A DNA stretch of 64,000 bases from Basidiobolus meristosporus CBS 931.73. Lineage: Eukaryota > Fungi > Basidiobolomycota. Made by a program: the position numbers and the translations under genes. The notes under the pieces were generated by a model, which worked only from the letters and a program-made list of their open reading frames with translations, ran no database searches and was not told where the DNA came from. The stretch spans positions 124,001 through 188,000 of the forward strand of contig MCFE01000037.1 in the NCBI GenBank assembly GCA_002104905.1. Reading direction: 5' to 3'. This document shows positions 23,905-55,374 of this stretch, one piece after another; within the stretch, counting starts at the first letter, position 1; each line of letters opens with the position of its first letter.

Positions 23905-24795
23905 TTAGAACTTGTTTCCACGACGACCAATGGTGGCAGTAATGTAGCCAGAGAAGTCGGTGACTGGAGAGAAAATGGTCATCTCTTGGCCAGCGTTGGG
24001 AAGGTTGAAGGGGGCAAGGTTGGTGGTGAAGTGATGGCTGTTGGGGAGTGCGTAGTACACATCACGGACTTCTGGGAAACGCTTCAAGATCAGCTCAGCC
24101 ATGCGGTACATGGTGGCCTGGACTGAGGCAGAGTCATCATGGGCGAACACATCAAGGGTGGTCTTACGGACTCCATCGAAGATGCGGTCGAATGGAATGT
24201 TCTCGACTCCAATCGAGGTGTCAATGTTGTAGTGGGCCTTGACGGTAGTGGAGAAGATACGGTCATCAGCATCTTGGAGAGTGGTGTTCTCGCAGAGATG
24301 GAAGTTGGTGAAGGATGAGCCGGTGGTCTTCAAGACGAGAAGGCCTTCCAAGCCAGACTTGATGCTGACATCGTTGGCGCTGACAGTGACCCAGGTCTCT
24401 CTGGTCTCGCTGCCGTCACGGTAGAAGGAGTGAGGGTGGGGCTCGCCGTTGACATTGATTCTGGTCCAGCGGAGTTGAACAATGTGGACGTGGGCGTGGG
24501 TGACATGAGGGTACTTGTCAACGAAGTGCTTGCCGAGTTCGTAACCGTAACGCTCGATGGTCTGAACGTGGTTGGACTTCTTGGCAATGATGTAGCAGGT
24601 GTTCTTGACAGTGTCGGTGGGGACGACCTTGCTGTTGTCAGCCTCGGTGTAAGCCTCTTCGAAGTCACCCTCGAGGAGCACTTGGACAGTGAGCTCGACA
24701 ATGTCGTTCCACTGGGGAGTGTGGCGGATAGCCTTGGTGACTCTGACCTTAGCCTTACCGTAGGCTTGGCGTTTTAACTCAACTGCAGAAGACAT
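23905..24795 (-). CDS. UOX: Urate oxidase, type B, copy B1
   Basis: Intact 296-aa ORF with all uricase motifs and LPNSH; ends -GNKF. Confidence 0.95.
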   Translation of the reverse strand: MSSAVELKRQAYGKAKVRVTKAIRHTPQWNDIVELTVQVLLEGDFEEAYTEADNSKVVPTDTVKNTCYIIAKKSNHVQTIERYGYELGKHFVDKYPHVTHAHVHIVQLRWTRINVNGEPHPHSFYRDGSETRETWVTVSANDVSIKSGLEGLLVLKTTGSSFTNFHLCENTTLQDADDRIFSTTVKAHYNIDTSIGVENIPFDRIFDGVRKTTLDVFAHDDSASVQATMYRMAELILKRFPEVRDVYYALPNSHHFTTNLAPFNLPNAGQEMTIFSPVTDFSGYITATIGRRGNKF

Positions 24796-25360
24796 TGTTG
24801 TATACGATTGGAACTAGGAACACTAATTATGGTGGAGTTCGTATGAAGCAATTTATACAACTCACCGAGATGAAGCGTACCACTGTTCGAGCCAATCATG
24901 GTGATTGGCGGCATAATGAATCCCACTAGATAATAACGGTGTTTGGCTCTATCAGTAGCTGCTAGATCAGATTCGAGTGTTCATCTAATCTTTCTGTGAG
25001 TAATTACCATCTTGAGCAATAGCCTAGAAAACATTACACATGTTTCAGATTGTGATTAATCTGATGATGAAATCTGGGAGATTTGATTGGAATTGCTGGC
25101 CGCGTGATCCACTGAATATGGATTCCACGAGCAGAGGTAGAGTTGGTGTGGAGCGAGTGCTAATGGCAAGCATGAATCGAGGCAATATCAATTCACAATG
25201 ATAATCAAAAGTAGCCCATAGTCAAGACCACGTGGTGTGCTATCAACGCGTTTTACAATGGCAACCTTTCATCACTTTTTAGTCGGTTTTATTACGGATT
25301 GACCAGGTCAATCAATGTTAATGGATGGTAATGAAAATGATCGTGAATACATTTACACGG

Positions 25361-26251
25361 TTAACGACGGGCAATAGTGGCAGTGATATAGCCAGATGGG
25401 TCACTGACAGGTTGGAAGATATCCATATCCTTGCCCTCGTTAGGAAGGTTGAAAGGCTTCAGGTTGACACTGAAGTAGTGCTTGTTGGGAAGAGCATAGC
25501 TGATCTCACTGACATCCTCAAAGCTGGCAAGAACCTTTTCGCCCATCTTGTACATGGTGGCTTGAACAGAGGCAGAGTTGTCAGTGGCGAAGGTGCTAAG
25601 TGTGATCTCACGAACACCCTCGGCAATTTCATCGAATGGAATCTCCTCAATCTTGGATTTATCAAGGTTGTACGTCCACTTGGCATCGACGCTGGTGGAG
25701 AAAATACGGTCGGTGGCATCTTGGAGAGTGGTGTACTCGCAACGGTGGAAGTTGGTGAATGAAGACCCAGTGGACTTCAACACAAGAAGGTCCTTGAGGC
25801 GGGACTCAATGGATACCTTACCGTTACGGGAGACAGTCAACTCCACACGTCTGGTCTCATCACCATCACGAAGGAAGGAGTGGGGGTGGAGTTGACCGTC
25901 GATCTCAACACGGGTCCAGCGGTGTTGGATAAGCTTGATGTAGACATCATCAACATGAGAGTATCTGTTGATGAAGTGTTGACCAATCTCGTAACCGAAA
26001 CGCTCGATGGTTTGAACTTGGTTGGACTTCTTGGCAAGGACATAGATGGTGTTCTTGACAGTGTCAGTGGGGACGACAACTGAGTTGTCAGCCTCGGTGT
26101 AGGAGGTCTCGAACTTGCCATCGAGGAGGACTTGAGCGGTGAGCTCAATAACATCATGCCAGTTCTTGGTGTGACGGATGACCTTTGTGAGGCGCACCTT
26201 GGTCTTACCGTAGGCTTGTTTCTTCAAGTAGGCACCAGATTTAGTAGACAT
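25361..26251 (-). CDS. UOX: Urate oxidase, type A, copy A2
   Basis: Intact 296-aa ORF with CEYTTL; ends -ARR. Confidence 0.95.
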   Translation of the reverse strand: MSTKSGAYLKKQAYGKTKVRLTKVIRHTKNWHDVIELTAQVLLDGKFETSYTEADNSVVVPTDTVKNTIYVLAKKSNQVQTIERFGYEIGQHFINRYSHVDDVYIKLIQHRWTRVEIDGQLHPHSFLRDGDETRRVELTVSRNGKVSIESRLKDLLVLKSTGSSFTNFHRCEYTTLQDATDRIFSTSVDAKWTYNLDKSKIEEIPFDEIAEGVREITLSTFATDNSASVQATMYKMGEKVLASFEDVSEISYALPNKHYFSVNLKPFNLPNEGKDMDIFQPVSDPSGYITATIARR

Positions 26252-26771
26252 GATAGAGGAATGAGTAGAGAGAACCAGAACAGTAAATCTCAGTATCAGA
26301 TCCCGCGGCCTTTATATATATCCCATTGGTGGTCGAACGTTTTGCCTCCATTGATTTATCTATCTAGATGAAAAGGAAAGTTCCCATGGTTTGGTTAAAT
26401 CAGATCAGATCACTCTGCGTAGTCTGTTCTTCTCTAGGTGTGGTGGTGATTCTAGCCATGATTTTGGTGAGAACATCACCTACGGTCTAGACTATACAAA
26501 TCCAGACTGGAATAACACTCTGTCTTCAGTGTACCTCTTAATCAGCTTAACCAAAACAGCGGTAGAGTGATCCTCATGTACCAATGCTATGGAACTGCGC
26601 GAAGAACCGGCTTACGTTATACAAAATGGATTGATCATATGTTTCTTGTTTTGATATAAGCATTGTTAGGTTTAAAGTATTTATTTACGCTGTTAAGGTT
26701 GGTCGGCTCTGACAATGGAGATTAGGATGCATGCGAAAAATCATGAGTGAATTCATTAATAATGTTTTCGT

Positions 26772-27662
26772 TTAGAATTTGTTTCCACGACGACCAATGG
26801 TGGCAGTGATGTAGCCAGAGAAGTCGGTGACTGGAGAGAAAATGGTCATCTCTTGGCCAGCGTTGGGAAGGTTGAAGGGGGCAAGGTTGGTGGTGAAGTG
26901 ATGGCTGTTGGGGAGTGCGTAGTACACATCACGGACTTCTGGGAAACGCTTCAAGATCAGCTCAGCCATGCGGTACATGGTGGCCTGGACTGAGGCGGAG
27001 TCATCGTGAGCGAACACATCAAGGGTGGTCTTGCGGACTCCTTCAAAGATGCGGTCGAATGGAATGTTCTCGACTCCAATCGAGGTGTCAATGTTGTAGT
27101 GGGCCTTGACAGTGGTGGAGAAGATACGGTCATCAGCATCTTGGAGAGTGGTGTTCTCGCAGTGATGGAAGTTGGTGAAGGATGAGCCGGTGGTCTTCAA
27201 GACGAGAAGGCCTTCCAAGCCAGACTTGATGCTGACATCGTTGGCGCTGACAGTGACCCAGGTCTCTCTGGTCTCGCTGCCGTCACGGTAGAAGGAGTGA
27301 GGGTGAGGCTCGCCGTTGACATTGATTCTGGTCCAGCGGAGTTGAACAATGTGGACGTTAGCGTGGGTGACATGAGGGTACTTGTCAACGAAGTGCTTGC
27401 CGAGTTCGTAACCGTAACGCTCGATGGTCTGAACGTGGTTGGACTTCTTGGCAATGATGTAGCAGGTGTTCTTGACAGTGTCGGTGGGGACGACCTTGCT
27501 GTTGTCAGCCTCGGTGTAAGCCTCTTCGAAGTCACCCTCGAGGAGCACTTGGACAGTGAGCTCGACAATGTCGTTCCACTGGGGAGTGTGGCGGATAGCC
27601 TTGGTGACTCTGACCTTAGCCTTACCGTAGGCTTGGCGTTTTAACTCAACTGCAGAAGACAT
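26772..27662 (-). CDS. UOX: Urate oxidase, type B, copy B2
   Basis: Intact; start MSSAVELK at 27662 by homology; ends -GNKF. Confidence 0.95.
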   Translation of the reverse strand: MSSAVELKRQAYGKAKVRVTKAIRHTPQWNDIVELTVQVLLEGDFEEAYTEADNSKVVPTDTVKNTCYIIAKKSNHVQTIERYGYELGKHFVDKYPHVTHANVHIVQLRWTRINVNGEPHPHSFYRDGSETRETWVTVSANDVSIKSGLEGLLVLKTTGSSFTNFHHCENTTLQDADDRIFSTTVKAHYNIDTSIGVENIPFDRIFEGVRKTTLDVFAHDDSASVQATMYRMAELILKRFPEVRDVYYALPNSHHFTTNLAPFNLPNAGQEMTIFSPVTDFSGYITATIGRRGNKF

Positions 27663-28146
27663 TGTCGTATAAGATTTGGATGATACTGATGTACGAGACT
27701 GACCGAGGAATTCCTTATATACGGAACTAGACTTCACCACTAGGGAGCAATATAATCAATATCTCCATGATCAATTGATAATCAGGGAGCATCAACTGGC
27801 TAGGCACATAAGTCTCATTCTTGTTCATCACTTTCATCAATTATGTTGCTTTACCGGTTTTTGTGGGAACGATCTATATTGGCAATCAAGATCGATGTGA
27901 GAGGATTTTCGTTCCCTCCGTTTCACTTTGTTCATTAATGCCACTCTTGGTGACATGGCGGAGACCCAAATTCCTTTATCTCTCTCTTGCAACTCGGAAA
28001 TATATAGGAATTTGCGTTCCATCTGGTTAGAGATAGTTTAAAAATGCAAGTATTTATTAGATTTTACGATTCAGGACTTTACACTACTCCGTTGTTATGG
28101 TGATGTTGGATGAAATGAATGATGTGAACAATTGTTGGTGAACAAT

Positions 28147-29037
28147 CTAACGACGGGCGATAGTGGCAGTGATATAGCCAGATGGGTCACTGACAGGTTG
28201 GAAGATATCCATATCCTTGCCCTCGTTAGGAAGGTTGAAAGGCTTCAGGTTGACACTGAAGTAGTGCTTGTTGGGAAGAGCATAGCTGATCTCACTGACA
28301 TCCTCAAAGCTGGCAAGAACCTTTTCGCCCATCTTGTACATGGTGGCTTGAACAGAGGCAGAGTTGTCAGTGGCGAAGGTGCTAAGTGTGATCTCACGAA
28401 CACCCTCGGCAATTTCATCGAATGGAATCTCCTCAATCTTGGATTTATCAAGGTTGTACGTCCACTTGGCATCGACACTGGTGGAGAAAATACGGTCGGT
28501 GGCATCTTGGAGAGTGGTGTACTCGCAACGGTGGAAGTTGGTGAATGAAGACCCAGTAGACTTCAACACAAGAAGGTCCTTGAGGCGAGACTCGATGGAT
28601 ACCTTACCGTTACGGGAGACAGTCAACTCAACACGTCTGGTCTCATCACCATCACGAAGGAAGGAGTGGGGGTGGAGTTGACCGTCGATCTCAACACGGG
28701 TCCAGCGGTGTTGGATAAGCTTGATGTAGACATCATCAACATGAGAGTATCTGTTGATGAAGTGTTGACCAATCTCGTAACCGAAACGCTCGATGGTTTG
28801 AACTTGGTTGGACTTCTTGGCAAGGACATAGATGGTGTTCTTGACAGTGTCAGTGGGGACGACAACTGAGTTGTCAGCCTCGGTGTAGGAGGTCTCGAAC
28901 TTGCCATCGAGGAGGACTTGAGCGGTGAGCTCAATAACATCATGCCAGTTCTTGGTGTGACGGATGACCTTTGTGAGGCGAACCTTGGTCTTACCGTAGG
29001 CTTGTTTCTTTAAGTAGGCACCAGAGTTAGCAGACAT
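28147..29037 (-). CDS. UOX: Urate oxidase, type A, copy A3
   Basis: Intact 296-aa ORF, nearly identical to A2; ends -ARR. Confidence 0.95.
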   Translation of the reverse strand: MSANSGAYLKKQAYGKTKVRLTKVIRHTKNWHDVIELTAQVLLDGKFETSYTEADNSVVVPTDTVKNTIYVLAKKSNQVQTIERFGYEIGQHFINRYSHVDDVYIKLIQHRWTRVEIDGQLHPHSFLRDGDETRRVELTVSRNGKVSIESRLKDLLVLKSTGSSFTNFHRCEYTTLQDATDRIFSTSVDAKWTYNLDKSKIEEIPFDEIAEGVREITLSTFATDNSASVQATMYKMGEKVLASFEDVSEISYALPNKHYFSVNLKPFNLPNEGKDMDIFQPVSDPSGYITATIARR

Positions 29038-29578
29038 TTTGTGTATTATGTAATTCGGGGAAGCAACCCTCTTGTATTTATAGACCTAGCTCTCCCCTGA
29101 TCATGCTGCCATTTTAACTCCCCCTCACCCGCACGCAGGTTTGGAGCAATCCTATTAGTCAGGAAAGGAAGTCAGTACTTGAATTCAAGGAATCCTATTC
29201 GATGGTTAGATAAGAAATCATTCATTTATTACTATCCTTATTCGATTTGGTCACACTTTTCCGATTATCTTAATAGATTTAATCTCAACCCCCCTCACCT
29301 CCAGTTTCCTGATTTATCGTCTCTTCACGATCTAAACGCTGGGCTACTTATGAATATAGTCGAATACCATTCATGTGCATTTTTGGACATGGGTGTTAAA
29401 TCATACACGTCACGACCACTTGTGGCTAATTTGATGTTTGCTCCTGTTACTTTTTGCGTGGTTTTTTTCTTTTCTTTGTCTGTTCCTTTCTAAAACACAA
29501 TCCATTTAATTTGCGTCGAAATTTATTATGTATATAATGGTGTAGAGTTACAGATGCGAATGTAAATTGAATGATGAT

Positions 29579-30469
29579 TTAGAACTTGTTTCCACGACGG
29601 CCAATGGTGGCAGTGATGTAGCCAGAGAAGTCGGTGACTGGAGAGAAAATGGTCATCTCTTGGCCAGCGTTAGGGAGGCTGAAGGGGGCAAGGTTGGTGG
29701 TGAAGTGATGGCTGTTGGGGAGTGCGTAGTACACATCACGGACTTCTGGGAAGCGCTTCAAGATCAGCTCAGCCATGCGGTACATGGTGGCCTGGACTGA
29801 GGCAGAGTCATCGTGAGCGAACACATCAAGGGTGGTCTTGCGGACTCCTTCAAAGATGCGGTCGAATGGAATGTTCTCGACTCCAATCGAGGTGTCAATG
29901 TTGTAGTGGGCCTTGACGGTAGTGGAGAAGATACGGTCATCAGCATCCTGCAGGGTGGTGTTCTCGCAGCGATGGAAGTTGGTGAAGGACGAGCCGGTGG
30001 TCTTCAAGACGAGAAGGCCTTCCAAGCCAGACTTGATGCTGACATCGTTGGCGCTGACAGTGACCCAGGTCTCTCTGGTCTCGCTGCCGTCACGGTAGAA
30101 GGAGTGAGGATGAGGTTGACCATTAACATTAATTCTAGTCCAGCGGAGTTGAACGATGTGAACGTGGGCGTGGGTGACATGAGGGTACTTGTCAACGAAG
30201 TGCTTGCCGAGTTCGTAACCGTAACGCTCGATGGTCTGAACGTGGTTGGACTTCTTGGCAATGATGTAGCAGGTGTTCTTGACAGTGTCGGTGGGGACGA
30301 CCTTGCTGTTGTCAGCCTCGGTGTAAGCCTCTTCGAAGTCACCCTCAAGGAGCACTTGGCAGGTGAGCTCGACAATGTCGTTCCACTGAGGAGTGTGGCG
30401 GATAGCCTTGGTGACTCTGACCTTAGCCTTACCGTAGGCTTGGCGTTTTAACTCAACAGAGGTAGACAT
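29579..30469 (-). CDS. UOX: Urate oxidase, type B, copy B3
   Basis: Intact; start MSTSVELK at 30469; ends -GNKF. Confidence 0.95.
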   Translation of the reverse strand: MSTSVELKRQAYGKAKVRVTKAIRHTPQWNDIVELTCQVLLEGDFEEAYTEADNSKVVPTDTVKNTCYIIAKKSNHVQTIERYGYELGKHFVDKYPHVTHAHVHIVQLRWTRINVNGQPHPHSFYRDGSETRETWVTVSANDVSIKSGLEGLLVLKTTGSSFTNFHRCENTTLQDADDRIFSTTVKAHYNIDTSIGVENIPFDRIFEGVRKTTLDVFAHDDSASVQATMYRMAELILKRFPEVRDVYYALPNSHHFTTNLAPFSLPNAGQEMTIFSPVTDFSGYITATIGRRGNKF

Positions 30470-30570
30470 GGCTGGAAGATAGAATTTGGGATCTGCGTGT
30501 GCGAACCCTATTCCCAACCTGGTGATTTATATAATCGGGTGACAAAAATTTTCCCACCTCACACGGGATT

Positions 30571-30617
30571 GATGATTCGGATGATTCGGATGATTCAGAT
30601 AATCTTCGAAGATAATC
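30571..30617. repeat. Short tandem repeat (GATGATTCR)3 followed by two GATAATC motifs, upstream of uricase B3
   Basis: The sequence reads gatgattcg gatgattcg gatgattca gataatc ttcgaa gataatc. Confidence 0.7.
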
Positions 30618-31679
30618 AGTATGATGGGAACACTCTTCGGTGTGCACAGCAATCTAGGCTTCGTACATGATGCACTGAAATATATTCACGAGATTAACCG
30701 TTGACTATATCAACCTGTATAGCGATTTATATTCTCAGTTAGAATCATGCGTTACTGATGAACAATGCCACCATATATAGTAATACCCTGGAGGATATTC
30801 TCGGATTTCCTGCAAACACCTTCCTTAATTACCCATAATGATGCAGGAAGCAGTCACAGATTCCGATGATAGTTTCAGATAATCTTTCAATTTCGGCGTA
30901 TTTGTTGTAAAGGGTATTACGAAGCGGATAATGGTGTATCAAACAACTCGAGGCCTAATCCCATTGCCATATAACTTATGTAAATCATTGACAGAGGAAG
31001 TGGGGGCCTTCTCTATTTTAAGTAATCTGCTTGAAGGTTTGGTGGTTTCTTGGGAGGCATCTCACCCCCATCTCTTCGTTGGGATATTTGATGTACAGCC
31101 TAAATATTGAAGTACGGTTGTATGGTGCATCCACACCTCTTTGGCAACGCTTTGGAACCAATTTGATATGTTTAACATATGGGGAATTAAGATATTTTGT
31201 TTTAGGCAATTGTTTGAAGCATTGCAATATTATTTATATGTTGGTATCTTTCGGTGAATTGGAGAGCCCACAGTCATCCAAGTCTAAAGCACTAATATTT
31301 CTGATAGAGTATTTATAATTTCTGGGAAACTTCATAATACCAAAGATGAGGATGCTATATGAAAGACCCCAGGAAGCTGTTTGTAAAGTTTGAGAGCTTT
31401 TGGTCGAGTTTGAAAATATTGATAACTTCCTAATTCAAAGAATCAGCTAATATCTTACAAACCAAATCTCAAGCAAATAATTCATAACTTAGCGATAGGC
31501 CAAATAGATTTTTAAGGTATATGAATGGCTTAGGTGTAAACGGAATACTTACAACAGATACTCCAGGACCTGTAAGTACTTGCAACCAAATTGACTTCGA
31601 GCACCAATACCAAGACCATGTTTAAGTAAATATGGCAGCATTTGTCTCCAACAAAATGTTGTAATAGTGTATTGACACC

Positions 31680-31990
31680 TAAATGTTCCATCAGCTTTGT
31701 CATTTAGATCATAGTTTACTATTTCCTGTCCAAATTTACTTTCAGCATGTACTTGGAATATCTTCACCAATATGTCAAGTGACCATACATGAAAATTGGC
31801 CAAGTATCCCAAAAGCCCCTAGACTTTGCACACATGCCATTAGGATCTTTCTAGACATATTTGATGCGTTTCTTTTGCCAAGACTTAGTAAAAGTATAAG
31901 CCTCATTTTTTCATTTAATAGGCCCTGAAGTAGAGACCATACAATCTTCTTGCTCTCCCAATCACTTCTGATATTGACAAGACCCTCACA
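31680..31990 (+). repeat. Degenerate copia LTR remnant (same family as 5846-6194)
   Basis: Shared blocks tacttggaatatcttcacca, actttgcacacat, gtaaaagtataa and ccaatcacttct. Confidence 0.65.
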
Positions 31991-40627: not shown

Positions 40628-41519
40628 TCAACGACGGGCAATGGTGGCAGTGATATAGCCAGATGGATCACTGATGGGTTGGAAGATGTTCATGTCCTTG
40701 CCTTCGTTGGGGAGGTTGAAGGGCTTCAAGTTGACGCTGAGGTAGTGCTTGTTGGGAAGAGCATAGCTGATCTCGCTGACATCCACGTTCTGTCCCAACA
40801 CCTTCTCACCCATTTGGTACATGGTGGCTTGCACCGAGGCTGAGTCATCGGTGGCGAAGGTGCTGAGGGTGATCTCACGAACGCTGCTGGCGATCTCGTC
40901 GAATGGAATCTCCTCGATCTTGGACTTCTCAAGGTTGTAGGTCCACTTGGCATCCACACTGGTGGAGAAGATGCGGTCGGTGGCATCCTGGAGAGTGGTG
41001 TTCTCACAACGGTGGAAGTTGGTGAATGAGGAGCCGGTGGACTTCAACACAAGGAGGTCCTTGAGGCGGGACTCGATGGACACCTTTCCATCACGAGAGA
41101 CAACCAGCTCAACACGTCTGGTCTCATCACCGTCACGGAGGAAGGAGTGCGGGTGGAGCTGGCCATCGATCTCAACGCGGGTCCAGCGGTGCTGGATGAG
41201 CTTGATGTAGACGTCATCGACATGAGAGTATCTGTTGATGAAGTGTTGACCAATCTCGTAGCCGAAACGCTCGATGGTCTGGACATTCTCGGACTTCTTG
41301 GCGAGGACATAGAGGGTGTTCTTGACAGTAGTCAGTGGGGACAACGACAGAGTTGTCAGCCTCGGTGTAGGAGGTCTCGAACTTGCCATCGAGGAGAACT
41401 TGAGCGGTGAGCTCGACAACATCATGCCAGTTCTTGGTGTGGCGGATGACCTTGGTGATGCGAACCTTGGTCTTGCCATAGGCTTGCTTCTTCAAGTAGG
41501 CACCGGAGTTACTAGACAT
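40628..41519 (-). CDS. UOX: Urate oxidase, type A, copy A4; +1 frameshift at about 41330 (pseudogene or assembly error)
   Basis: Length is 892 nt instead of 891. It reads gacagtAgtcagt where paralogs have gacagtgtcagt; otherwise intact. Confidence 0.8.
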
Positions 41520-42030: not shown

Positions 42031-42922
42031 ATGTCATCCTTCGTTGAACTAAAACGTCAAGCTTACGGTAAAGCCAAGGTCAGAGTGCACCAAGGCCATC
42101 CGCCACACCGCCTAGTACAACGACATTCGTTGAGCTCACTTGCCAAGTCCTTCTCGAGGGTGACTTCGAAGAGGCTTACACCAAGGCTGACAACAGCATG
42201 GTTGTCCCCACTGACACTGTCAAGAACACCTGCTACGTCATTGCCAAGAAGTCCGACCATGTTCAGACCATCGAACGTTATGCTACGAGCTTGGCAAGCA
42301 CTTCGTTGACAAGTACTCCCATGTCACCCATGCTCATGTGCACATTGTCAAGTACCGCTGGGCCAGAATCAATGTCAACGGCGAGCCCCACCCTCACTCC
42401 TTCTACCGTGACGGCAGCGAGACCAGAGAGACCTGGGTCACAGTCAGTGCGAACGATGTCAGCATCAAGTCTGGCTTGGAAGGCCTCCTTGTGTTGAAGA
42501 CCACCGGCTCGTCCTTCACCAACTTCCATCACTGCGAGAACACCACTCTCCAAGATGCTGATGACCGTATCTTCTCCACCACTGTCAAGGCCCACTACAA
42601 CATCGACACCTCGATTGGAGTCGAGAACATTCCATTCGACCGCATCTTTGAAGGAGTCCGCAAGACCACCCTGGATGTGTTCGCTCACGATGACTCTGCC
42701 TCAGTCCAGGCCACCATGTACCTCATGGGTGATGTGATCTTGAAACGCTATCCCGAAGTTCAGGATGTGTACTACGCCCTCCCCAACAGCCATCATTTCA
42801 CCACTAACCTCGAGCCATTCAACCTTCCTAACTCCGGCCGAGAGATGACTATTTTCTCACCCATTACCGACTTCTCGGGGTACATTACTGCTACGATTGG
42901 TCGGCGTGGTAACAAGTTCTAA
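42031..42922 (+). pseudogene. UOX: Urate oxidase, type B, copy B4; three 1-bp indels and a TAG in the 5' third (pseudogene or assembly error)
   Basis: Lesions at agagtGcacc, gccTagtac, gacattCgtt and tatgctacgag. The 3' two-thirds is intact and ends -GNKF. Confidence 0.75.
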
Positions 42923-43384
42923 TGTATCACAAAAGTTCCTTGTGTAAAATTCGGCAGTAAATATAGCATTCGTTCTAAACCATTATCCTGAGCCTGCTGC
43001 TTCATCGATCCGAAAATAGTAAGGTTAATCTGAATAGTTCGGCTCGTCAAATACATTGAAAGGCAGCCAACAAGATTGCCATATCAGCCGCTATAAAACG
43101 TGTAATCTTATTTGCACCAACATCTCAAACTTTAGCATGACAAAAAGTGAGCCTTCACGAACTCATTTAACTGGACCAATAATGCTCCGCTGAAACGAAT
43201 AGTCAGTAGTGTAGTCTACCACAAACATCCAATTAAGTATCAGCTACACACTGTTCAGTTTTCAATGTTCATTTCAACCCATTATCAATCTCACTAATAG
43301 AATTGACAGGACTTCATTAGAGATTGGTCATAGATTTAATGGTAGAGTTTATTGAATTACTAATTGCTAAAATTTACAAAGGGC

Positions 43385-44275
43385 TTAACGACGAGCAATG
43401 GTAGCAGTGATATAGCCAGATGGATCACTGATGGGTTGGAAGATGTTCATGTCCTTGCCTTCGTTGGGAAGGTTGAAGGGCTTCAAGTTGACGCTGAGGT
43501 AGTGCTTGTTGGGAAGAGCATAGCTGATCTCGCTGACATCCACGTTCTGTCCCAACACCTTCTCACCCATTTGGTACATGGTGGCTTGCACCGAGGCTGA
43601 GTCATCGGTGGCGAAGGTGCTGAGGGTGATCTCACGAACGCTGTTGGCGATCTCGTCGAATGGAATCTCCTCGATCTTGGACTTCTCAAGGTTGTAGGTC
43701 CACTTGGCATCCACGCTGGTGGAGAAGATGCGGTCGGTGGCATCCTGGAGAGTGGTGTTCTCACAACGGTGGAAGTTGGTGAATGAGGAGCCGGTGGACT
43801 TCAACACAAGGAGATCCTTGAGGCGGGACTCGATGGACACCTTTCCATCACGAGAGACAACCAGCTCAACACGTCTGGTCTCATCACCGTCACGGAGGAA
43901 GGAGTGCGGGTGGAGCTGGCCATCGATCTCAACGCGGGTCCAGCGGTGCTGGATGAGCTTGATGTAGACGTCATCGACATGAGAGTATCTGTTGATGAAG
44001 TGTTGACCAATCTCGTAGCCGAAACGCTCGATGGTCTGGACATTCTCGGACTTCTTGGCGAGGACATAGAGGGTGTTCTTGACAGTATCGGTGGGGACAA
44101 CGACAGAGTTGTCAGCCTCGGTGTAGGAGGTCTCGAACTTGCCATCGAGGAGAACTTGAGCGGTGAGCTCGACAACATCATGCCAGTTCTTGGTGTGGCG
44201 GATGACCTTGGTGATGCGAACCTTGGTCTTGCCATAGGCTTGCTTCTTCAAATAGGCACTGGAAGTGTTGGACAT
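43385..44275 (-). CDS. UOX: Urate oxidase, type A, copy A5
   Basis: Intact 296-aa ORF. Confidence 0.95.
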   Translation of the reverse strand: MSNTSSAYLKKQAYGKTKVRITKVIRHTKNWHDVVELTAQVLLDGKFETSYTEADNSVVVPTDTVKNTLYVLAKKSENVQTIERFGYEIGQHFINRYSHVDDVYIKLIQHRWTRVEIDGQLHPHSFLRDGDETRRVELVVSRDGKVSIESRLKDLLVLKSTGSSFTNFHRCENTTLQDATDRIFSTSVDAKWTYNLEKSKIEEIPFDEIANSVREITLSTFATDDSASVQATMYQMGEKVLGQNVDVSEISYALPNKHYLSVNLKPFNLPNEGKDMNIFQPISDPSGYITATIARR

Positions 44276-44792: not shown

Positions 44793-45683
44793 ATGTCTGC
44801 ATCTGTTGAGTTGAAGCGCCAAGCCTATGGTAAAGCCAAGGTCAGAGTCACCAAGGCCATTCGCCACACCGCCCAATACAACGACATCGTTGAGCTCACT
44901 TGCCAAGTCCTTCTCGAGGGTGACTTCGAAGAGGCTTACACCAAGGCTGACAACAGCATGGTTGTCCCCACTGACACTGTCAAGAACACCTGCTACGTCA
45001 TTGCCAAGAAGTCCGACCATGTTCAGACCATCGAGCGTTATGCCTACGAGCTCGGCAAGCACTTCGTTGACAAGTACACCCATGTCACCCATGCTCATGT
45101 GCACATTGTCAAGTACCGCTGGGCCAGAATCAATGTCAACGGCGAGCCCCACCCTCACTCCTTCTACCGCGATGGTAGTGAGACCAGAGAGACCTGGGTC
45201 ACAGTCAGTGCGAACGATGTCAGCATCAAGTCTGGCTTGGAAGGCCTCCTTGTGTTGAAGACCACCGGCTCGTCCTTCACCAACTTCCATCGCTGCGAGA
45301 ACACCACTCTCCAAGATGCTGATGACCGTATCTTCTCCACCACTGTCAAGGCCCACTACAACATCGACACCTCGGTTGGAGTCGAGAACATTCCATTCGA
45401 CCGCATCTTTGAAGGAGTCCGCAAGACCACCCTTGATGTGTTCGCCCACGATGACTCTGCCTCAGTCCAGGCCACCATGTACCGCATGGCTGAGTTGATC
45501 TTGAAGCGCTTCCCAGAAGTCCGTGATGTGTACTACGCCCTCCCCAACAGCCATCACTTCACCACCAACCTTGCCCCCTTCAACCTCCCGAATGCTGGCC
45601 AAGAGATGACCATTTTCTCCCCAGTCACCGACTTCTCTGGATACATTACTGCTACCATTGGTCGTCGTCGCAGCAACTTCTAA
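44793..45683 (+). CDS. UOX: Urate oxidase, type B, copy B5
   Basis: Intact; start MSASVELK; ends -RRRSNF. Confidence 0.95.
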   Translation: MSASVELKRQAYGKAKVRVTKAIRHTAQYNDIVELTCQVLLEGDFEEAYTKADNSMVVPTDTVKNTCYVIAKKSDHVQTIERYAYELGKHFVDKYTHVTHAHVHIVKYRWARINVNGEPHPHSFYRDGSETRETWVTVSANDVSIKSGLEGLLVLKTTGSSFTNFHRCENTTLQDADDRIFSTTVKAHYNIDTSVGVENIPFDRIFEGVRKTTLDVFAHDDSASVQATMYRMAELILKRFPEVRDVYYALPNSHHFTTNLAPFNLPNAGQEMTIFSPVTDFSGYITATIGRRRSNF

Positions 45684-47141: not shown

Positions 47142-48033
47142 TTAACGACGAGCAATGGTAGCAGTAATATAGCCAGATGGATCACTGATGGGTTGGAAGA
47201 TATTCATGTCCTTGCCTTCGTTGGGGAGGTTGAAGGGCTTCAAGTTGACGCTGAGGTAGTGCTTGTTGGGAAGAGCATAGCTGATCTCGCTGACATCCAC
47301 GTTCTGTCCCAACACCTTCTCACCCATTTGGTACATGGTAGCTTGCACCGAGGCTGAGTCATCGGTGGCGAAGGTGCTGAGGGTGATCTCACGAACGCTG
47401 CTGGCGATCTCGTCGAATGGAATCTCCTCGATCTTGGACTTCTCAAGGTTGTAGGTCCACTTGGCATCCACACTGGTGGAGAAGATGCGGTCGGTGGCGT
47501 CCTGGAGAGTGGTGTTCTCACAACGGTGGAAGTTGGTGAATGATGAGCCGGTGGACTTCAACACAAGGAGGTCCTTGAGGCGGGACTCGATGGACACCTT
47601 TCCATCACGAGAGACAACCAGCTCAACACGTCTGGTCTCATCACCGTCACGGAGGAAGGAGTGCGGGTGGAGCTGGCCATCGATCTCAACGCGGGTCCAG
47701 CGGTGCTGGATGAGCTTGATGTAGACATCATCGACATGAGAGTATCTGTTGATGAAGTGTTGACCAATCTCGTAGCCGAAACGCTCGATGGTCTGGACAT
47801 TCTCGGACTTCTTGGCGAGGACATAGAGGGTGTTCTTGACAGTGTCAGTGGGGACAACGACAGAGTTGTCAGCCTCGGTGTAGGAGGTCTCGAACTTGCC
47901 ATCGAGGAGGACTTGAGCGGTGAGCTCGACAACATCGTGCCAGTTCTTAGTGTGGCGGATGATCCTTGGTGATGCGAACCTTGGTCTTGCCATAGGCTTG
48001 CTTCTTCAAATAGGCACTGGAAGTGTTGGACAT
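47142..48033 (-). CDS. UOX: Urate oxidase, type A, copy A6; +1 frameshift at about 47962
   Basis: Length 892 nt; reads gatgaTccttgg versus gatgaccttgg in paralogs. Confidence 0.8.
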
Positions 48034-48554
48034 TTCGTTACTAGATATTTGGCAGATACTTTGAACTCCTGATAGATACGAGTGACAATGACTTCTCTTA
48101 TATAACTGGTAGTGCCACTTGTTGATCTTAATTTACCATTGGAGTAGGTAGAATCTTTTTAGAAATATATGTGATGGCCTCGGCCAGCCCACTACGATGA
48201 TGCACAAAGTGTGTGTGTGAGATGCGGTCACAGCCCTCATTTGTAGATATTCTCAGGAATAGAGATCAACTACACATCCTTCATTACCAGCGATGGGAGA
48301 TGATTTGTGTGACAGCAACTGCGTTGCAACTAGATCCGCAAGTCCCATCTAATCTACTATGTTCTCGTGACTAGTGGCCGTGTGCAATTGCCAATGCCTA
48401 GATCCAGAAATTAGAATAACACCGAGATTGCAGTGAAATGAACATGGTGCATATCCGAGGATGTATGTGGTCGGGAACTTTCTCAGATTGTATATATATG
48501 CCGCGCTGAAGAAATGGAAAGGCCAAGCAATATCATTGGTAAGTGATTTGAAGT

Positions 48555-49445
48555 ATGTCTGCCTCTGTTCAATTAAAACGTCAAGCCTATGGTAAAGCCA
48601 AGGTCAGAGTCACCAAGGCCATCCGCCACACCGCCCAATACAACGACATTGTCGAGCTCACTTGCCAAGTCCTTCTCGAGGGTGACTTCGAAGAGGCTTA
48701 CACCAAGGCTGACAACAGCATGGTTGTCCCCACTGACACTGTCAAGAACACCTGCTACGTCATTGCCAAGAAGTCCGACCATGTTCAGACCATCGAACGT
48801 TATGCCTACGAGCTCGGCAAGCACTTCGTTGACAAGTACTCCCATGTCACCCATGCTCATGTGCACATTGTCAAGTACCGCTGGGCCAGAATCAATGTCA
48901 ACGGCGAGCCCCACCCTCACTCCTTCTACCGTGACGGCAGCGAGACCAGAGAGACCTGGGTCACGGTCAGTGCGAACGATGTCAGCATCAAGTCTGGCTT
49001 GGAAGGCCTTCTTGTGTTAAAGACCACCGGCTCGTCCTTCACCAACTTCCATCACTGCGAGAACACCACTCTCCAAGACGCTGATGACCGTATCTTCTCC
49101 ACCACTGTCAAGGCCCACTACAACATCGACACCTCGATTGGAGTCGAGAACATTCCATTCGACCGCATCTTTGAAGGAGTCCGCAAGACCACCCTGGATG
49201 TGTTCGCCCACGATGACTCTGCCTCAGTCCAGGCCACCATGTACCGCATGGCTGAGCTGATCTTGAAGCGCTTCCCAGAAGTCCGTGATGTGTACTACGC
49301 CCTCCCCAACAGCCATCACTTCACCACCAACCTTGCCCCCTTCAACCTCCCTAACGCTGGCCAAGAGATGACCATTTTCTCCCCTGTTACTGACTTCTCT
49401 GGATACATCACCGCAACCATTGGTCGTCGTGGCAACAAATTCTAA
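48555..49445 (+). CDS. UOX: Urate oxidase, type B, copy B6
   Basis: Intact 296-aa ORF; ends -GNKF. Confidence 0.95.
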   Translation: MSASVQLKRQAYGKAKVRVTKAIRHTAQYNDIVELTCQVLLEGDFEEAYTKADNSMVVPTDTVKNTCYVIAKKSDHVQTIERYAYELGKHFVDKYSHVTHAHVHIVKYRWARINVNGEPHPHSFYRDGSETRETWVTVSANDVSIKSGLEGLLVLKTTGSSFTNFHHCENTTLQDADDRIFSTTVKAHYNIDTSIGVENIPFDRIFEGVRKTTLDVFAHDDSASVQATMYRMAELILKRFPEVRDVYYALPNSHHFTTNLAPFNLPNAGQEMTIFSPVTDFSGYITATIGRRGNKF

Positions 49446-50305
49446 TTCATTCCATTAACGTATGTAAAACATCCATTAAATATCAACTACCATCAATCCT
49501 TATTGCATTTTTGAAACTTAATAGAGTAGTGTGAAAACCTAGTTGAATCAACTACAATTTTATATAAGTGCAGGAATAATAACGGTGGACTTCTGGCAAC
49601 CCTAAACCTTTCCTGGGTTGATATCTGGTGAACCTTCCATACAAATATCAAATATAGAAATGGTTCAGAGGTGATGTTTAGCTACAGAGTACGGGTTGAT
49701 AATCTGGGAGATATATAATTTAAATAAGGGCAATTTTTGTAAGCCAAATAAAATGATCGACCTCCCGGTTCGTCATTAAATGGGAACTGGAAAAATGAGT
49801 TCGTCTCATAATTCAAACTACTGAAGTTTTGTGACCACATTTTTCGCCACCACTACCGTCAAATAAAGTTACAGGAATTGGTGGTGAACTATGTTGAGAT
49901 GTAAATTGGGTTTATCTTTTAGCCACAGTGGGCCATATGCTGTTACTAATACCGGTTGTATACACACCCAGATACTTCTGTACTCATTAATAATAAAATA
50001 TTGTATCCGACTGTATTAGAAATACTCCAAAGTTTGGGTAGTATTTCATCCCCATTGAAAGATATTAATGAAAAACGGGAAGCACTGATCAATTTCAAAT
50101 ACAAACAGAGAAATCAGGCATTATAGCAGCTCGCTTTGACTGCTCACATGGCCATTGTCTGCATCAAACACACAGCGCCCATGGTGTTCCATGTCGAAGG
50201 ATGTTCAATGCGTTCGAAATTGAGTTGATATATTATTTTAATAGTGTCAGATATTACATGATGTGCAATGATACGAATGGGGTAAACGCCCAAAATACCA
50301 AAACC

Positions 50306-51196
50306 TTAACGACGAGCAATGGTAGCAGTGATATAGCCAGATGGATCACTGATGGGTTGGAAGATGTTCATGTCCTTGCCTTCGTTGGGGAGGTTGAAGG
50401 GCTTCAAGTTGACGCTGAGGTAGTGCTTGTTGGGAAGAGCATAGCTGATCTCGCTGACATCCACGTTCTGTCCCAACACCTTCTCACCCATTTGGTACAT
50501 GGTGGCTTGCACCGAGGCTGAGTCATCGGTGGCGAAGGTGCTGAGGGTGATCTCACGAACGCTGCTGGCGATCTCGTCGAATGGAATCTCCTCGATCTTG
50601 GACTTCTCAAGGTTGTAGGTCCACTTGGCATCCACACTGGTGGAGAAGATGCGGTCGGTGGCATCCTGGAGAGTGGTGTTCTCACAACGGTGGAAGTTGG
50701 TGAATGATGAGCCGGTGGACTTCAACACAAGGAGATCCTTGAGGCGGGACTCGATGGACACCTTTCCATCACGAGAGACAACCAGCTCAACACGTCTGGT
50801 CTCATCACCGTCACGGAGGAAGGAGTGCGGGTGGAGCTGGCCATCGATCTCAACGCGGGTCCAGCGGTGCTGGATGAGCTTGATGTAGACGTCATCGACA
50901 TGAGAGTATCTGTTGATGAAGTGTTGGCCAATCTCGTAGCCGAAACGCTCGATGGTCTGGACATTCTCGGACTTCTTGGCGAGGACATAGAGGGTGTTCT
51001 TGACAGTGTCAGTGGGGACAACGACAGAGTTGTCAGCCTCGGTGTAGGAGGTCTCGAACTTGCCATCGAGGAGAACTTGAGCGGTGAGCTCGACAACATC
51101 ATGCCAGTTCTTGGTGTGGCGGATGACCTTGGTGATGCGAACCTTGGTCTTGCCATAGGCTTGCTTCTTCAAGTAGGCACCGGAAGTGTTGGACAT
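50306..51196 (-). CDS. UOX: Urate oxidase, type A, copy A7
   Basis: Intact 296-aa ORF. Confidence 0.95.
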   Translation of the reverse strand: MSNTSGAYLKKQAYGKTKVRITKVIRHTKNWHDVVELTAQVLLDGKFETSYTEADNSVVVPTDTVKNTLYVLAKKSENVQTIERFGYEIGQHFINRYSHVDDVYIKLIQHRWTRVEIDGQLHPHSFLRDGDETRRVELVVSRDGKVSIESRLKDLLVLKSTGSSFTNFHRCENTTLQDATDRIFSTSVDAKWTYNLEKSKIEEIPFDEIASSVREITLSTFATDDSASVQATMYQMGEKVLGQNVDVSEISYALPNKHYLSVNLKPFNLPNEGKDMNIFQPISDPSGYITATIARR

Positions 51197-51326
51197 TTTG
51201 CAGATAGGTATTTGACTTATACTTCATGTGTGGTCCTCTCTCAGTTAAATAGTAAATATTCGGCACGTGCATCCACCACCAATTCGGAGTTGTATGAATG
51301 GGAAATATGTAGGTTTCAGAGTGGCC

Positions 51327-51340
51327 TCGGCCTTTGCCGA
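51327..51340. promoter_or_regulatory. TCGG-N6-CCGA inverted repeat (UaY/Ppr1-type Zn2Cys6 site consensus) in the A7/B7 divergent spacer
   Basis: The sequence TCGG cctttg CCGA is present. Function is not shown, and only the TCGGCC half is kept in sister promoters. Confidence 0.4.
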
Positions 51341-51677
51341 CTGCTGTCCTACCAAGATCAAGGAGTAAGTGGTGCTTCCCTCAAACGTAGATAATCTCAG
51401 GGTTGAGATCTACTTCTCGTCCTTAGTTACAGCCGTAGATGAATTTGTGTGACACAAATTGCTGTACTGCGAAGTCATACTGGTCAAATCTTATCTATCT
51501 TGCACCAGAACCAAGCATCAGTCAGTCCCACCGTAGGCCTAGAATCCGGATATAATTTTGGCAGCCGGATTCAGTAGCAGAATTATTAGTGGCGAAAGAA
51601 ATTTCCATGATTTTAGGAGTATATATACCGGCATTATTCAGCAGTATAGACCACACAATCATTTCAAAAGAATAGAA

Positions 51678-52569
51678 ATGTCTGGAGCTGTTGAGTTGAA
51701 GCGTCAAGCCTATGGTAAAGCCAAGGTCAGAGTCACCAAGGCCATTCGCCACACCGCCCAGTACAACGACATCGTTGAGCTCACTTGCCAAGTCCTTCTC
51801 GAGGGTGACTTCGAAGAGGCTTACACCAAGGCTGACAACAGCATGGTTGTCCCCACTGACACTGTCAAGAACACCTGCTACGTCATTGCCAAGAAGTCCG
51901 ACCATGTTCAGACCATCGAGCGTTATGCTTACGAGCTCGGCAAGCACTTCGTTGACAAGTACACCCATGTCACCCATGCTCATGTGCACATTGTCAAGTA
52001 CCGCTGGGCCAGAATCAATGTCAACGGCGAGCCCCACCCTCACTCCTTCTACCGTGACGGCAGCGAGACCAGAGAGACCTGGGTCACAGTCAGTGCGAAC
52101 GATGTCAGCATCAAGTCTGGCTTGGAAGGCCTTCTTGTGTTGAAGACCACCGGTTCGTCCTTCACCAACTTCCATCACTGCGAGAACACCACTCTCCAAG
52201 ACGCTGATGACCGTATCTTCTCCACCACTGTCAAGGCCCACTACAACATCGACACCTCGATTGGAGTCGAGAACATTCCATTCGACCGCATCTTCGACGG
52301 AGTCCGCAAGACCACCCTTGGATGTGTTCGCTCACGATGACTCTGCCTCAGTCCAGGCCACCATGTACCGCATGGCTGAGTTGATCTTGAAGCGCTTCCC
52401 AGAAGTCCGTGATGTGTACTACGCCCTCCCCAACAGCCATCACTTCACCACCAACCTTGCCCCCTTCAGCCTCCCTAACGCTGGCCAAGAGATGACCATT
52501 TTCTCCCCAGTCACCGACTTCTCTGGATACATTACTGCTACCATTGGCCGTTGTAACACCAAATTCTAA
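51678..52569 (+). CDS. UOX: Urate oxidase, type B, copy B7; +1 frameshift at about 52320
   Basis: Length 892 nt; reads acccttGgatgtg; ends -CNTKF. Confidence 0.8.
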
Positions 52570-53089
52570 TCCATACTACCATTTCTCACACAGCACATTA
52601 AATAAATTCATCACTTATGACATCCGTTCATGTATTCTAGGCTTCCTAAATATGTGGTACACCATCCGAACTTAAGGTTCGAGTAGTACTTCGGAAGTCG
52701 CCACTGCAGATCTGTTACCCAAGCATACTCATTTACCCTATATCTGTATTATTCCAACGCAAATGAATGATGTATCACCGCTTTCAATGATAATATGAAA
52801 TCGTACATAGCAACTGCGTTATTCTTAGTTAAACCCTAATGTATATATTGAAATACACGTTGTTTACAGAGTACAGAAATGTGATCATCAACTTTATGTT
52901 AGTGGGTTTTAAAGTGCGCTTTGAGTGTTCAATGTTAATTGTCTGCATCGCATCAAAATTGATCATGAGATCAACAGTCCAAGGATGTTCAATGCGTTCG
53001 AAATTGAGTTGATATATTATTTTAATAATGTCAGATATTACATGATGTCCAATGATACGGATAGGGTAAACGCCCAAAATACCAAAACC

Positions 53090-53977
53090 TTAACGACGGG
53101 CAATGGTGGCAGTGATATAGCCAGATGGATCACTGATGGGTTGGAAGATGTTCATGTCCTTGCCTTCGTTGGGAAGGTTGAAGGGCTTCAAGTTGACGCT
53201 GAGGTAGTGCTTGTTGGGAAGAGCATAGCTGATCTCGCTGACATCCACGTTCTGTCCCAACACCTTCTCACCCATTTGGTACATGGTGGCTTGCACCGAG
53301 GCTGAGTCATCGGTGGCGAAGGTGCTGAGGGTGATCTCACGAACGCTGCTGGCGATCTCGTCGAATGGAATCTCCTCGATCTTGGACTTCTCAAGGTTGT
53401 AGGTCCACTTGGCATCCACACTGGTGGAGAAGATGCGGTCAGTGGCATCCTGGAGAGTGGTGTTCTCACAACGGTGGAAGTTGGTGAATGAGGAGCCGGT
53501 GGACTTCAACACAAGGAGGTCCTTGAGGCGGGACTCGATGGACACCTTTCCATCACGAGAGACAACCAGCTCAACACGTCTGGTCTCATCACCGTCACGG
53601 AGGAAGGAGTGCGGGTGGAGCTGGCCATCGATCTCAACGCGGGTCCAGCGGTGCTGGATGAGCTTGATGTAGACATCATCGACATGAGAGTATCTGTTGA
53701 TGAAGTGTTGACCAATCTCGTAACCGAAACGCTCGATGGTCTGGACATTCTCGGACTTCTTGGCGAGGACATAGAGGGTGTTCTTGACAGTGTCGGTGGG
53801 GACAACGACAGAGTTGTCAGCCTCGGTGTAGGAGGTCTCGAACTTGCCATCGAGGAGGACTTGAGCGGTGAGCTCGACAACATCGTGCCAGTTCTTAGTG
53901 TGGCGGATGACCTTGGTGATGCGAACCTTGGTCTTGCCATAGGCTTGTTTCTTCAAGTAAGCAACGGAATTAGGCAT
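53090..53977 (-). CDS. UOX: Urate oxidase, type A, copy A8
   Basis: Intact 295-aa ORF, start MPNSVAY. Confidence 0.95.
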   Translation of the reverse strand: MPNSVAYLKKQAYGKTKVRITKVIRHTKNWHDVVELTAQVLLDGKFETSYTEADNSVVVPTDTVKNTLYVLAKKSENVQTIERFGYEIGQHFINRYSHVDDVYIKLIQHRWTRVEIDGQLHPHSFLRDGDETRRVELVVSRDGKVSIESRLKDLLVLKSTGSSFTNFHRCENTTLQDATDRIFSTSVDAKWTYNLEKSKIEEIPFDEIASSVREITLSTFATDDSASVQATMYQMGEKVLGQNVDVSEISYALPNKHYLSVNLKPFNLPNEGKDMNIFQPISDPSGYITATIARR

Positions 53978-54483
53978 AACTTTATGATTACAAGAGTTCA
54001 GTCAATGTGGTATGGTAGGCATCCAGTTCCTATTTATAGATATTGACCGCTTCCCTCATAACGGTAATGGTCGTCTTCCGGATTCCTCAATAACAACCTG
54101 AGTCTCGGCCTTTCTTATCTCCAGTAAATTCAGGAACCGGGGCCTGATGATGGTAACACATACACTTTATTCTGTTGCACCATTCAAGTTTGAAAGTCGG
54201 TCTGAGCTTCAGTCTGCGTAACCGATTATTTGAAAATGTATAAAAACTTCATCTCGGAGGTTTTCTGTACCACAATCCAGTTGGACATGCCGATCCTAAA
54301 TAGTCAAATCTCATCTTGATGAATCTCTTGGTATCATCAAATATTCTGTGCAAAGCCTGGATTCTTGAGCAATCATAATTGCGTGTCTATTGCAAAGCTA
54401 ATGTAATAATGCTGGTCTTAATAGTATAAAAGCGCTCTATCAACCAACATTATAGGTCAGAAACCTTGAGTGGAAGTACAAGA

Positions 54484-55374
54484 ATGTCAGGTTCAGTAGA
54501 GTTGAAGCGTCAAGCCTATGGTAAAGCCAAGGTCAGAGTGACCAAGGCCATCCGCCACACCGCCCAGTACAACGACATCGTTGAGCTCACTTGCCAAGTC
54601 CTTCTCGAGGGTGACTTCGAAGAGGCTTACACCAAGGCTGACAACAGCATGGTTGTCCCCACTGACACTGTCAAGAACACCTGCTACGTCATTGCCAAGA
54701 AGTCCGACCATGTTCAGACCATCGAACGTTATGCCTACGAGCTCGGCAAGCACTTCGTTGACAAGTACACCCATGTCACCCATGCTCATGTGCACATTGT
54801 CAAGTACCGCTGGGCCAGAATCAATGTCAACGGCGAGCCCCACCCTCACTCCTTCTACCGTGACGGCAGCGAGACCAGAGAGACCTGGGTCACAGTCAGT
54901 GCGAACGATGTCAGCATCAAGTCTGGCTTGGAAGGCCTTCTTGTGTTGAAGACCACCGGTTCGTCCTTCACCAACTTCCATCACTGCGAGAACACCACTC
55001 TCCAAGACGCTGATGACCGTATCTTCTCCACCACTGTCAAGGCCCACTACAACATCGACACCTCGATTGGAGTCGAGAACATTCCATTCGACCGCATCTT
55101 CGACGGAGTCCGCAAGACCACCCTTGATGTGTTCGCTCACGATGACTCTGCCTCAGTCCAGGCCACCATGTACCGCATGGCTGAGTTGATCTTGAAGCGC
55201 TTCCCAGAAGTCCGTGATGTGTACTACGCACTCCCCAACAGCCATCACTTCACCACCAACCTTGCCCCCTTCAACCTCCCTAACGCTGGCCAAGAGATGA
55301 CCATTTTCTCCCCAGTCACCGACTTCTCTGGATACATTACTGCTACCATTGGCCGTCGTAGGAACAAATTCTAG
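54484..55374 (+). CDS. UOX: Urate oxidase, type B, copy B8
   Basis: Intact; start MSGSVELK at 54484; ends -RRRNKF. Confidence 0.95.
   Translation: MSGSVELKRQAYGKAKVRVTKAIRHTAQYNDIVELTCQVLLEGDFEEAYTKADNSMVVPTDTVKNTCYVIAKKSDHVQTIERYAYELGKHFVDKYTHVTHAHVHIVKYRWARINVNGEPHPHSFYRDGSETRETWVTVSANDVSIKSGLEGLLVLKTTGSSFTNFHHCENTTLQDADDRIFSTTVKAHYNIDTSIGVENIPFDRIFDGVRKTTLDVFAHDDSASVQATMYRMAELILKRFPEVRDVYYALPNSHHFTTNLAPFNLPNAGQEMTIFSPVTDFSGYITATIGRRRNKF

Follow-up and report, generated by a model that had tools for sequence, protein, structure and literature searches.

What should be made of a fungal genome in which uricase, a textbook peroxisomal marker and homotetramer, is encoded many times over by two kinds of gene lying side by side, one with and one without a C-terminal extension resembling a type 1 peroxisomal targeting signal (PTS1)? 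The question is raised by a stretch of 64,000 nucleotides from Basidiobolus meristosporus CBS 931.73 (assembly GCA_002104905.1, contig MCFE01000037.1, positions 124,001 to 188,000), hereafter the window, which we mapped with a six-frame open reading frame (ORF) list, tblastn searches with one copy of each kind (type A and type B) and a read-out of the 3' ends. Intron-free uricase ORFs of about 296 codons, recovered by ORF listing and translation, span 22.5-58 kb of the window and comprise 17 full-length genes, frameshifted ones counted, plus fragments (Table 1); as assembled, and judged by alignment to intact copies, six type A and six type B genes are intact. The answer we favour, with a probability of roughly 0.55, is that urate oxidation is divided between two compartments, type B being peroxisomal in part and type A cytosolic.

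The two types part company at the C-terminus. Type A stops directly after the last beta-strand, at ARR in A1-A7 and ARRQ in A0, and type B runs on to GNKF (B1, B2, B3, B4, B6), RNKF (B8), NTKF (B7) or RSNF (B5), with GNKL on a C-terminal remnant; the read-out of every copy agrees exactly with the tails listed in the initial annotation of this DNA. We also inspected the genomic surroundings of further Basidiobolus uricases, translating their neighbours. At these loci, numbered L001 to L009, the B tails are SKI (L005), TKI (L001), NKI twice (L003), SRI (L006), NRI (L002) and again NKF (L004 and, in B. ranarum, L009), and the A genes end in ARR, ARRT, ARRR, ARGQ or ARRGY. The broad PTS1 consensus [ACHKNPST][HKNQRS][AFILMV], as quoted in PMC12316961, is matched by 13 of 13 intact B genes and by 0 of 12 A genes. 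Under a strict rule, [SAC][KRH][LMI], only two B genes qualify, SKI at L005 and SRI at L006, both from B. ranarum, and again none of the 12 A genes; the NKF, TKF, SNF and NKL tripeptides of the window's B copies all fail it. No PTS1-like tripeptide was found in the 12 type A genes, which end in ARR, RRQ, RRT, RRR, RGQ or RGY. The B5 tail, for which a loss of targeting had been suspected, still lies within the broad consensus, and the B5 gene is under purifying selection. In type B the tail is preceded by RR or RRR, and such upstream arginines agree with a known enhancing pattern as given in an excerpt of PMC9542071. The difference between A and B recurs at seven further loci of two species and is not chance.

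Could one type be a disabled companion of the other? Both are true uricases, catalytically complete as far as residue content can tell. The Pfam uricase family (PF01014) is matched in two stretches by each, at 244.9 bits for A and 222.8 bits for B against a cut-off of 25 (E-values 1e-66 to 1e-73), and among solved structures the best match is the urate oxidase of Aspergillus flavus (E-value 1e-82, about 50% identity). An AlphaFold2 (AF2) model of B1 has the expected double beta-beta-alpha-alpha-beta-beta layout, with a mean predicted local distance difference test score (pLDDT) of 91.2 and a predicted template modelling score (pTM) of 0.87. Eight residues that we take to be the catalytic ones of the A. 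flavus enzyme (K10, T57, D58, F159, R176, Q228, N254 and H256, in A. flavus numbering, mapped via alignment to the A. flavus uricase) show no variation among the 12 A and 13 B genes compared. We considered, and rejected, a reading of B as a pseudo-enzyme lacking the urate-binding arginine: the variable site in FH[R/H/L]CEN is position 164, and R176, in DRIFST, does not vary. Position 164, near the substrate pocket, is itself curious, being Leu in B1, His in B2, B6, B7 and B8, and Arg in B3 and B5, among copies otherwise 94-99% identical; it is Arg throughout the A copies. In a word-index protein search the B. ranarum uricases match the window proteins at 88% identity and below.

In a maximum-likelihood tree, type A (support 100/98) and type B (100/100) form separate clades that are sisters (93/91), apart from other fungal uricases, and the two clades have parallel internal branching. 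The pair therefore has a single origin within the Basidiobolus lineage and was then copied as a unit. Nei-Gojobori ratios of nonsynonymous to synonymous divergence (dN/dS) range over 0.02-0.18, whichever two genes of the same type are compared. Synonymous divergence is 0.04-0.15 inside the window's two sub-clusters and 0.3-0.6 between them, and reaches saturation (1.3-2.8) between the main lineages. Across this saturated divergence type B has kept its tail length, the position of its stop codon, a hydrophobic residue at -1 and a basic residue at -2 (Asn in B5 only), while the codons beneath have turned over synonymously (AAG, AAA, CGA and CGC; ATC, ATT, TTC and TTT). A Jukes-Cantor simulation, with a crude substitution model and an ancestor assumed to end in SKI, retained the consensus tail and stop with a probability of about 0.05 per lineage at d = 0.6, and about 1e-5 for four lineages. 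The broken copies offer a contrast: B9 and the uricase genes at L007 and L008, with lost stops or internal stops, have the pattern of neutral decay. These observations suggest that selection has maintained the B tail, and the split between PTS1-like and PTS1-less copies proposed in the initial annotation proves to be real, old and maintained.

What might the tail be maintained for? In the B1 model the last strand stops at residue 290, and residues 294-296 have a pLDDT below 50; a structural cause for the constraint is unlikely, since the tail residues are predicted to be unstructured. The tail does align, residue for residue, with PTS1-bearing ends such as RKDSKL of Rhizopus. Among the 99 other fungal uricases in the top matches listed, 66 have a strict PTS1 at the C-terminus (SKL or AKL in most), and 25 lack a PTS1, being shortened at the same point as type A. 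The alignment of the B tail with the PTS1 of other fungal uricases suggests that type B inherited the ancestral signal and altered it, and the sequences make it most likely that B is a selected though weak PTS1 carrier.

How weak is a matter of some importance, and several observations weigh against an import of type B. In Saccharomyces cerevisiae, -NKF gave 'very weak' targeting with a PTS1 predictor score of 'Not targeted', and it mutated spontaneously to the stronger -NKL within few passages (PMC4526572). This study is the sole experimental record of -NKF targeting that we found (PMC4526572), and by analogy the B copies of the window might be largely cytosolic. The initial annotation had held -NKF to be a reported PTS1 of methylotrophic yeasts; in the literature searched we found no such report. 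The -NKL of Hansenula DHAS is said to act as a PTS1. The B tail also evolves faster than the remainder of the protein, its three positions having undergone about eight replacements within the B clade, and the simplicity of the simulation must be borne in mind. Finally, the Pex5 receptor of Basidiobolus may have a signal preference of its own.

These observations could be taken to mean that both types are cytosolic enzymes, and that the tail of B is a decaying remnant of the ancestral [SA]KL or serves another purpose. NKF, SNF and TKF depart from the canonical tripeptide at two of their three positions, which together with the very weak targeting by -NKF in yeast (PMC4526572), the rapid change of the tail relative to the protein body and the quarter of other listed fungal uricases that do without a PTS1 would suit such an account. 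A decaying remnant sits poorly, however, with a tail whose length, stop, basic -2 and hydrophobic -1 survive saturated synonymous divergence, with the SKI and SRI of B. ranarum, with the speed at which pseudogenised copies lose their stop codon, and with the lack of an apparent structural role for a segment predicted to be unstructured. We regard a wholly cytosolic pair as distinctly improbable.

The genomic arrangement bears on a further possibility. Every type A gene examined adjoins a type B gene, in two species and at about ten loci, the window included, so the pairing that had been described as obligate is universal across the loci sampled. Pairs were found in B. meristosporus at L001, L003 (two pairs) and L004, and in decayed form at L007 and L008, and in B. 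ranarum at L005, L006 and L009. L001 and L005 have the same flanking genes - adenosine deaminase, a PALP enzyme, polyprenyl synthase and ATP synthase subunit E - and thus represent one ancestral locus in two species. At L009 (positions 3-1716) B precedes A on the same strand and the B tail is GNKF; both the tandem layout and -NKF thus occur outside the window as well. In all, at least 12 intact uricase genes lie in the window, and the count of genes and fragments over all loci exceeds 25.

So strict an association invites the suggestion, made in the initial annotation, of piggy-back import, in which A enters peroxisomes only in complex with B. In our version A and B would assemble in the cytosol into heterotetramers, with pairing and copy balance supplying both subunits; in the boldest form the heterotetramer would be obligate or preferred, and B the carrier whose deliberately weak PTS1 meters the peroxisomal entry of abundant, signal-less A. 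Constant adjacency agrees with this, as do the equal numbers of intact A and B genes in the window (six of each), strong purifying selection on both types, and the joint duplication and joint decay of pairs: the near-identical loci L007 (5221-6860) and L008 (4219-5457) each hold an A/B pair in which both members are degenerate, with an internal stop in B and stop codons lost in both A and B. A weak PTS1 would, moreover, allow time for cytosolic assembly, and hetero-oligomers of other proteins are established natural piggy-back cargoes, although recognised cases are few and inefficient (PMC4680570). Against this, PEX5 blocks tetramerisation of mouse uricase, the monomers of which are imported in vitro, whereas import of tetramers went undetected (PMC4422123). 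All catalytic residues are present in both paralogues, so that neither depends on the other and no heteromer is forced; PTS1-less uricases occur alone in other fungi; and neighbouring genes co-duplicate by segmental duplication regardless of function.

The intergenic regions shared by paired genes measure 260-670 bp (517 bp between the start codons of A4 and B5), and in the head-to-head spacers a TATATAA box lies about 40-60 bp from each start codon. Beyond TATATAA no shared motif was found in these head-to-head spacers, a further point against piggy-backing, and blastn detected no similarity between them and the spacers of the same-strand cluster. An idea that net charge drives A and B into heteromers was dropped, the isoelectric points overlapping (6.5-7.8 for A, 6.4-6.95 for B). 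Taken together, we consider carriage of A by B unlikely.

Does type A perhaps have a peroxisomal route of its own, through a PTS2, an extension gained by read-through or splicing, or a patch inside the protein that binds Pex5? The PTS2 consensus [RK][LVIQ]xx[LVIHQ][LSGAK]x[HQ][LAF] has no match in the 25 A and B proteins; the string nearest to it, RLTKVIRHT, belongs to the conserved first beta-strand. Read-through of the A4 stop (TAA, 43385) would add ALCKF, and that of the L001 A gene (TAG, 8856) 15 residues ending LSKLGNKL. These are the only two PTS1-like ends among 14 read-through peptides, a frequency close to chance, and they are probably due to chance. A cryptic PTS1 reached by read-through or frameshift past the A stops was rejected, as the extensions differ between copies. 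To our knowledge the stop contexts of type A are not among the known leaky ones, and each gene consists of one continuous ORF. In favour of a hidden route, yeast Eci1 is described as contacting Pex5 through interfaces that do not depend on a PTS1. We judge a hidden route for type A very improbable indeed. With no recognisable signal, its default destination would be the cytosol; that a signal-less uricase is viable in fungi follows from the 25 of 99 listed fungal uricases that likewise stop after the last strand.

We therefore return to dual compartmentation, for which the following history can be proposed. In the lineage of Basidiobolus, an ancient duplication would have produced two catalytically complete uricase paralogues in head-to-head orientation, and the resulting A/B pair would then have been copied many times as a unit. 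Type B would have retained, under purifying selection, a degenerate PTS1 of the form [S/T/N]-[K/R]-[I/F/L] behind its arginines, probably of low to moderate strength, the -NKF form of the window especially so, and type A would have lost the tail through truncation directly after the last beta-strand. Recognition by Pex5 would bring B, at least partly, into peroxisomes, and A would stay in the cytosol, as the PTS1-less uricases of several fungal lineages presumably do; A and B are probably co-expressed, each from its own TATA box at either end of the shared intergenic region. The assignment of A to the cytosol and B to the peroxisome, first put forward in the initial annotation, thus stands in part: the tail dichotomy, its conservation and the near-canonical SKI and SRI of B. 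ranarum favour it, and the very weak performance of -NKF in yeast does not.

Table 1. Uricase genes and gene fragments in the window.
Feature	Type and state	C-terminal end	Coordinates	Strand	Identified by
A0	Type A, intact; outside the range of the initial annotation	ARRQ	22491..23384	-	ORF list, tblastn, 3' end
B1	Type B, intact	GNKF	23905..24795	-	ORF list, Pfam, 3' end, AF2 model
A1	Type A, intact	ARR	25361..26251	-	ORF list, Pfam, structure-match search, 3' end
B2	Type B, intact	GNKF	26772..27662	-	ORF list, tblastn, 3' end
A2	Type A, intact	ARR	28147..29037	-	ORF list, tblastn, 3' end
B3	Type B, intact	GNKF	29579..30469	-	ORF list, tblastn, 3' end
A3	Type A, +1 nt frameshift near 41331	ARR	40628..41519	-	tblastn, 3' end, alignment
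B4	Type B, three 1-nt indels (42087, 42128, 42283)	GNKF	~42031..42922	+	tblastn, 3' end, alignment
A4	Type A, intact	ARR	43385..44275	-	ORF list, 3' end
B5	Type B, intact	RSNF	44793..45683	+	ORF list, 3' end
A5	Type A, +1 nt frameshift near 47963	ARR	47142..48033	-	tblastn, 3' end, alignment
B6	Type B, intact	GNKF	48555..49445	+	ORF list, 3' end
A6	Type A, intact	ARR	50306..51196	-	ORF list, 3' end
B7	Type B, +1 nt frameshift near 52318	CNTKF	51678..52569	+	tblastn, 3' end, alignment
A7	Type A, intact	ARR	53090..53977	-	ORF list, 3' end
B8	Type B, intact	RNKF	54484..55374	+	ORF list, 3' end
A fragment	Type A, N-terminal fragment		55884..56039	-	tblastn
B9	Type B, broken (8-nt + 1-nt deletions), stop codon lost	GNKF	56603..57441	+	tblastn, 3' end, alignment
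B remnant	Type B, C-terminal remnant, stop at 57607	GNKL	57607..57855	-	tblastn, 3' end
A fragment	Type A, fragment		57881..58081	+	tblastn

Within the window the array has two parts. At 22.5-30.5 kb the cluster A0-B1-A1-B2-A2-B3 lies wholly on the minus strand, and at 40.6-55.4 kb there follow five head-to-head pairs, A3/B4 to A7/B8, with A on the minus and B on the plus strand; the gap between the two contains the genes for anamorsin and CRM1. Broken uricase pieces continue to 58.1 kb. Among them, at 57543-57569, is a head-to-head telomere-type repeat (TTAGGG x2 against CCCTAA x2), which separates the broken B9 from the inverted B remnant at the point where the orientation of the array flips. 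Five genes are frameshifted as assembled (B4, B7, B9, A3 and A5). The genome was sequenced with PacBio (PMC7466969), for which reason some of the single-base indels in the uricase copies may be sequencing errors. Public gene models should be used with care here: P0006 (302 aa) has a B1-like start and an A0-like end (…ARRQ) and appears to be a chimera of two genes, and P0003 (286 aa) and P0005 (279 aa) seem to be spliced around frameshifts (window positions 22491-24795 and 51678-52569).

Directly upstream of the array lie two paralogous genes for inosine-uridine-preferring nucleoside hydrolase (PF01156; 16160-17203 and 20680-21756, both on the minus strand), each product ending …LGCNIHA, on either side of an amino-acid transporter fragment (PF01490) at 19260-20285 on the plus strand. 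The GC content of this block is 0.52-0.55, against 0.38-0.49 in its surroundings, and genes of purine salvage or catabolism may be grouped here. On the left, where the window is AT-rich, there are ORFs of a Copia-type long terminal repeat (LTR) retrotransposon (gag, integrase and RVT_2) and a Transposase_21 fragment, at 5923-9703 (plus strand) and 1481-2305 (minus strand). Elsewhere, the syntenic A/B pair adjoins the purine-catabolic adenosine deaminase gene (PF00962) in both species (L001, 7125-8606; L005, 9316-10830), and the decayed pair of L007 and L008 is flanked on one side by an ABC transporter and on the other by a gene encoding BPSS1860 and chitin-binding domains. The surroundings of the B. 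ranarum pair at L005 include, at a distance of about 6 kb, a gene called with a Thiol_cytolysin domain (positions 1-105; PF01289, the cholesterol-dependent cytolysin family), which is unusual in a fungus and may have been acquired horizontally.

Why should a fungus carry so many uricase genes? Reptile excreta consist mostly of uric acid. The sequenced strain of B. meristosporus was isolated from gecko dung (PMC7466969), and an excerpt of PMC9506373 has Basidiobolus typically shed by reptiles and amphibians. Given the source of the strain and the uric acid in reptile excreta, it is plausible that the amplification is a nutritional adaptation; the library that we searched yielded no literature linking Basidiobolus with uricase. 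Should urate oxidation indeed be divided as we propose, it would constitute a natural split of a hydrogen peroxide-producing step between cytosol and peroxisome. Piggy-backing, if it were true, would mean that import is dosed by hitch-hiking and is tunable via a bidirectional gene pair. The B tails, with SKI, SRI, TKI, NKI, NRI, NKF, SNF and NKL on one scaffold, form a natural series useful for measuring signal strength.

How do these genes compare with known systems? The urate oxidase of A. flavus (PDB 1r51/2iba family) is the product of a single gene, a homotetramer with a canonical -SKL tail. The Basidiobolus proteins have the same fold and the same active-site residues, and their core ends at the same arginine, but here there are two paralogues, one cut at that arginine and one with a degenerate tail. 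Uricases of Schizosaccharomyces, of Xylariales/Podospora and of lichen fungi stop after the last strand (…VARK, …VSRS, …TVTR) in the manner of type A, though no PTS1-bearing partner accompanies them among the matches listed, and both Xylaria bambusicola entries end …VSRS. As for paralogues that divide between compartments, yeast Idp2/Idp3 and Mdh2/Mdh3 likewise carry a PTS1 on one member only, giving cytosolic and peroxisomal pools (the origin of IDP3 from IDP2 is treated in PMC4526572). Those are unlinked single genes, however, whereas the Basidiobolus genes lie head-to-head, are conserved together as a pair and have been amplified more than ten-fold. A possible parallel for carriage of A by B is found in SOD1 with CCS and in LDH with its read-through form LDHBx, where a signal-less subunit rides on a PTS1 partner and import is partial (PMC4680570); in contrast to these, no uricase heteromer has been demonstrated, and mouse uricase prefers to be imported as a monomer (PMC4422123). 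The cryptic -NKF downstream of ACO2 in S. cerevisiae is identical as a tripeptide to that of the window's B copies, but it was an artificial in-frame construct, with very weak targeting that improved as -NKL (PMC4526572). The proteins themselves are thus ordinary members of the uricase family, and a split between cytosol and peroxisome via PTS1-bearing and PTS1-less paralogues is already well known; what is new here is the enzyme involved, the conserved head-to-head pair, its amplification and the graded natural series of PTS1 forms.

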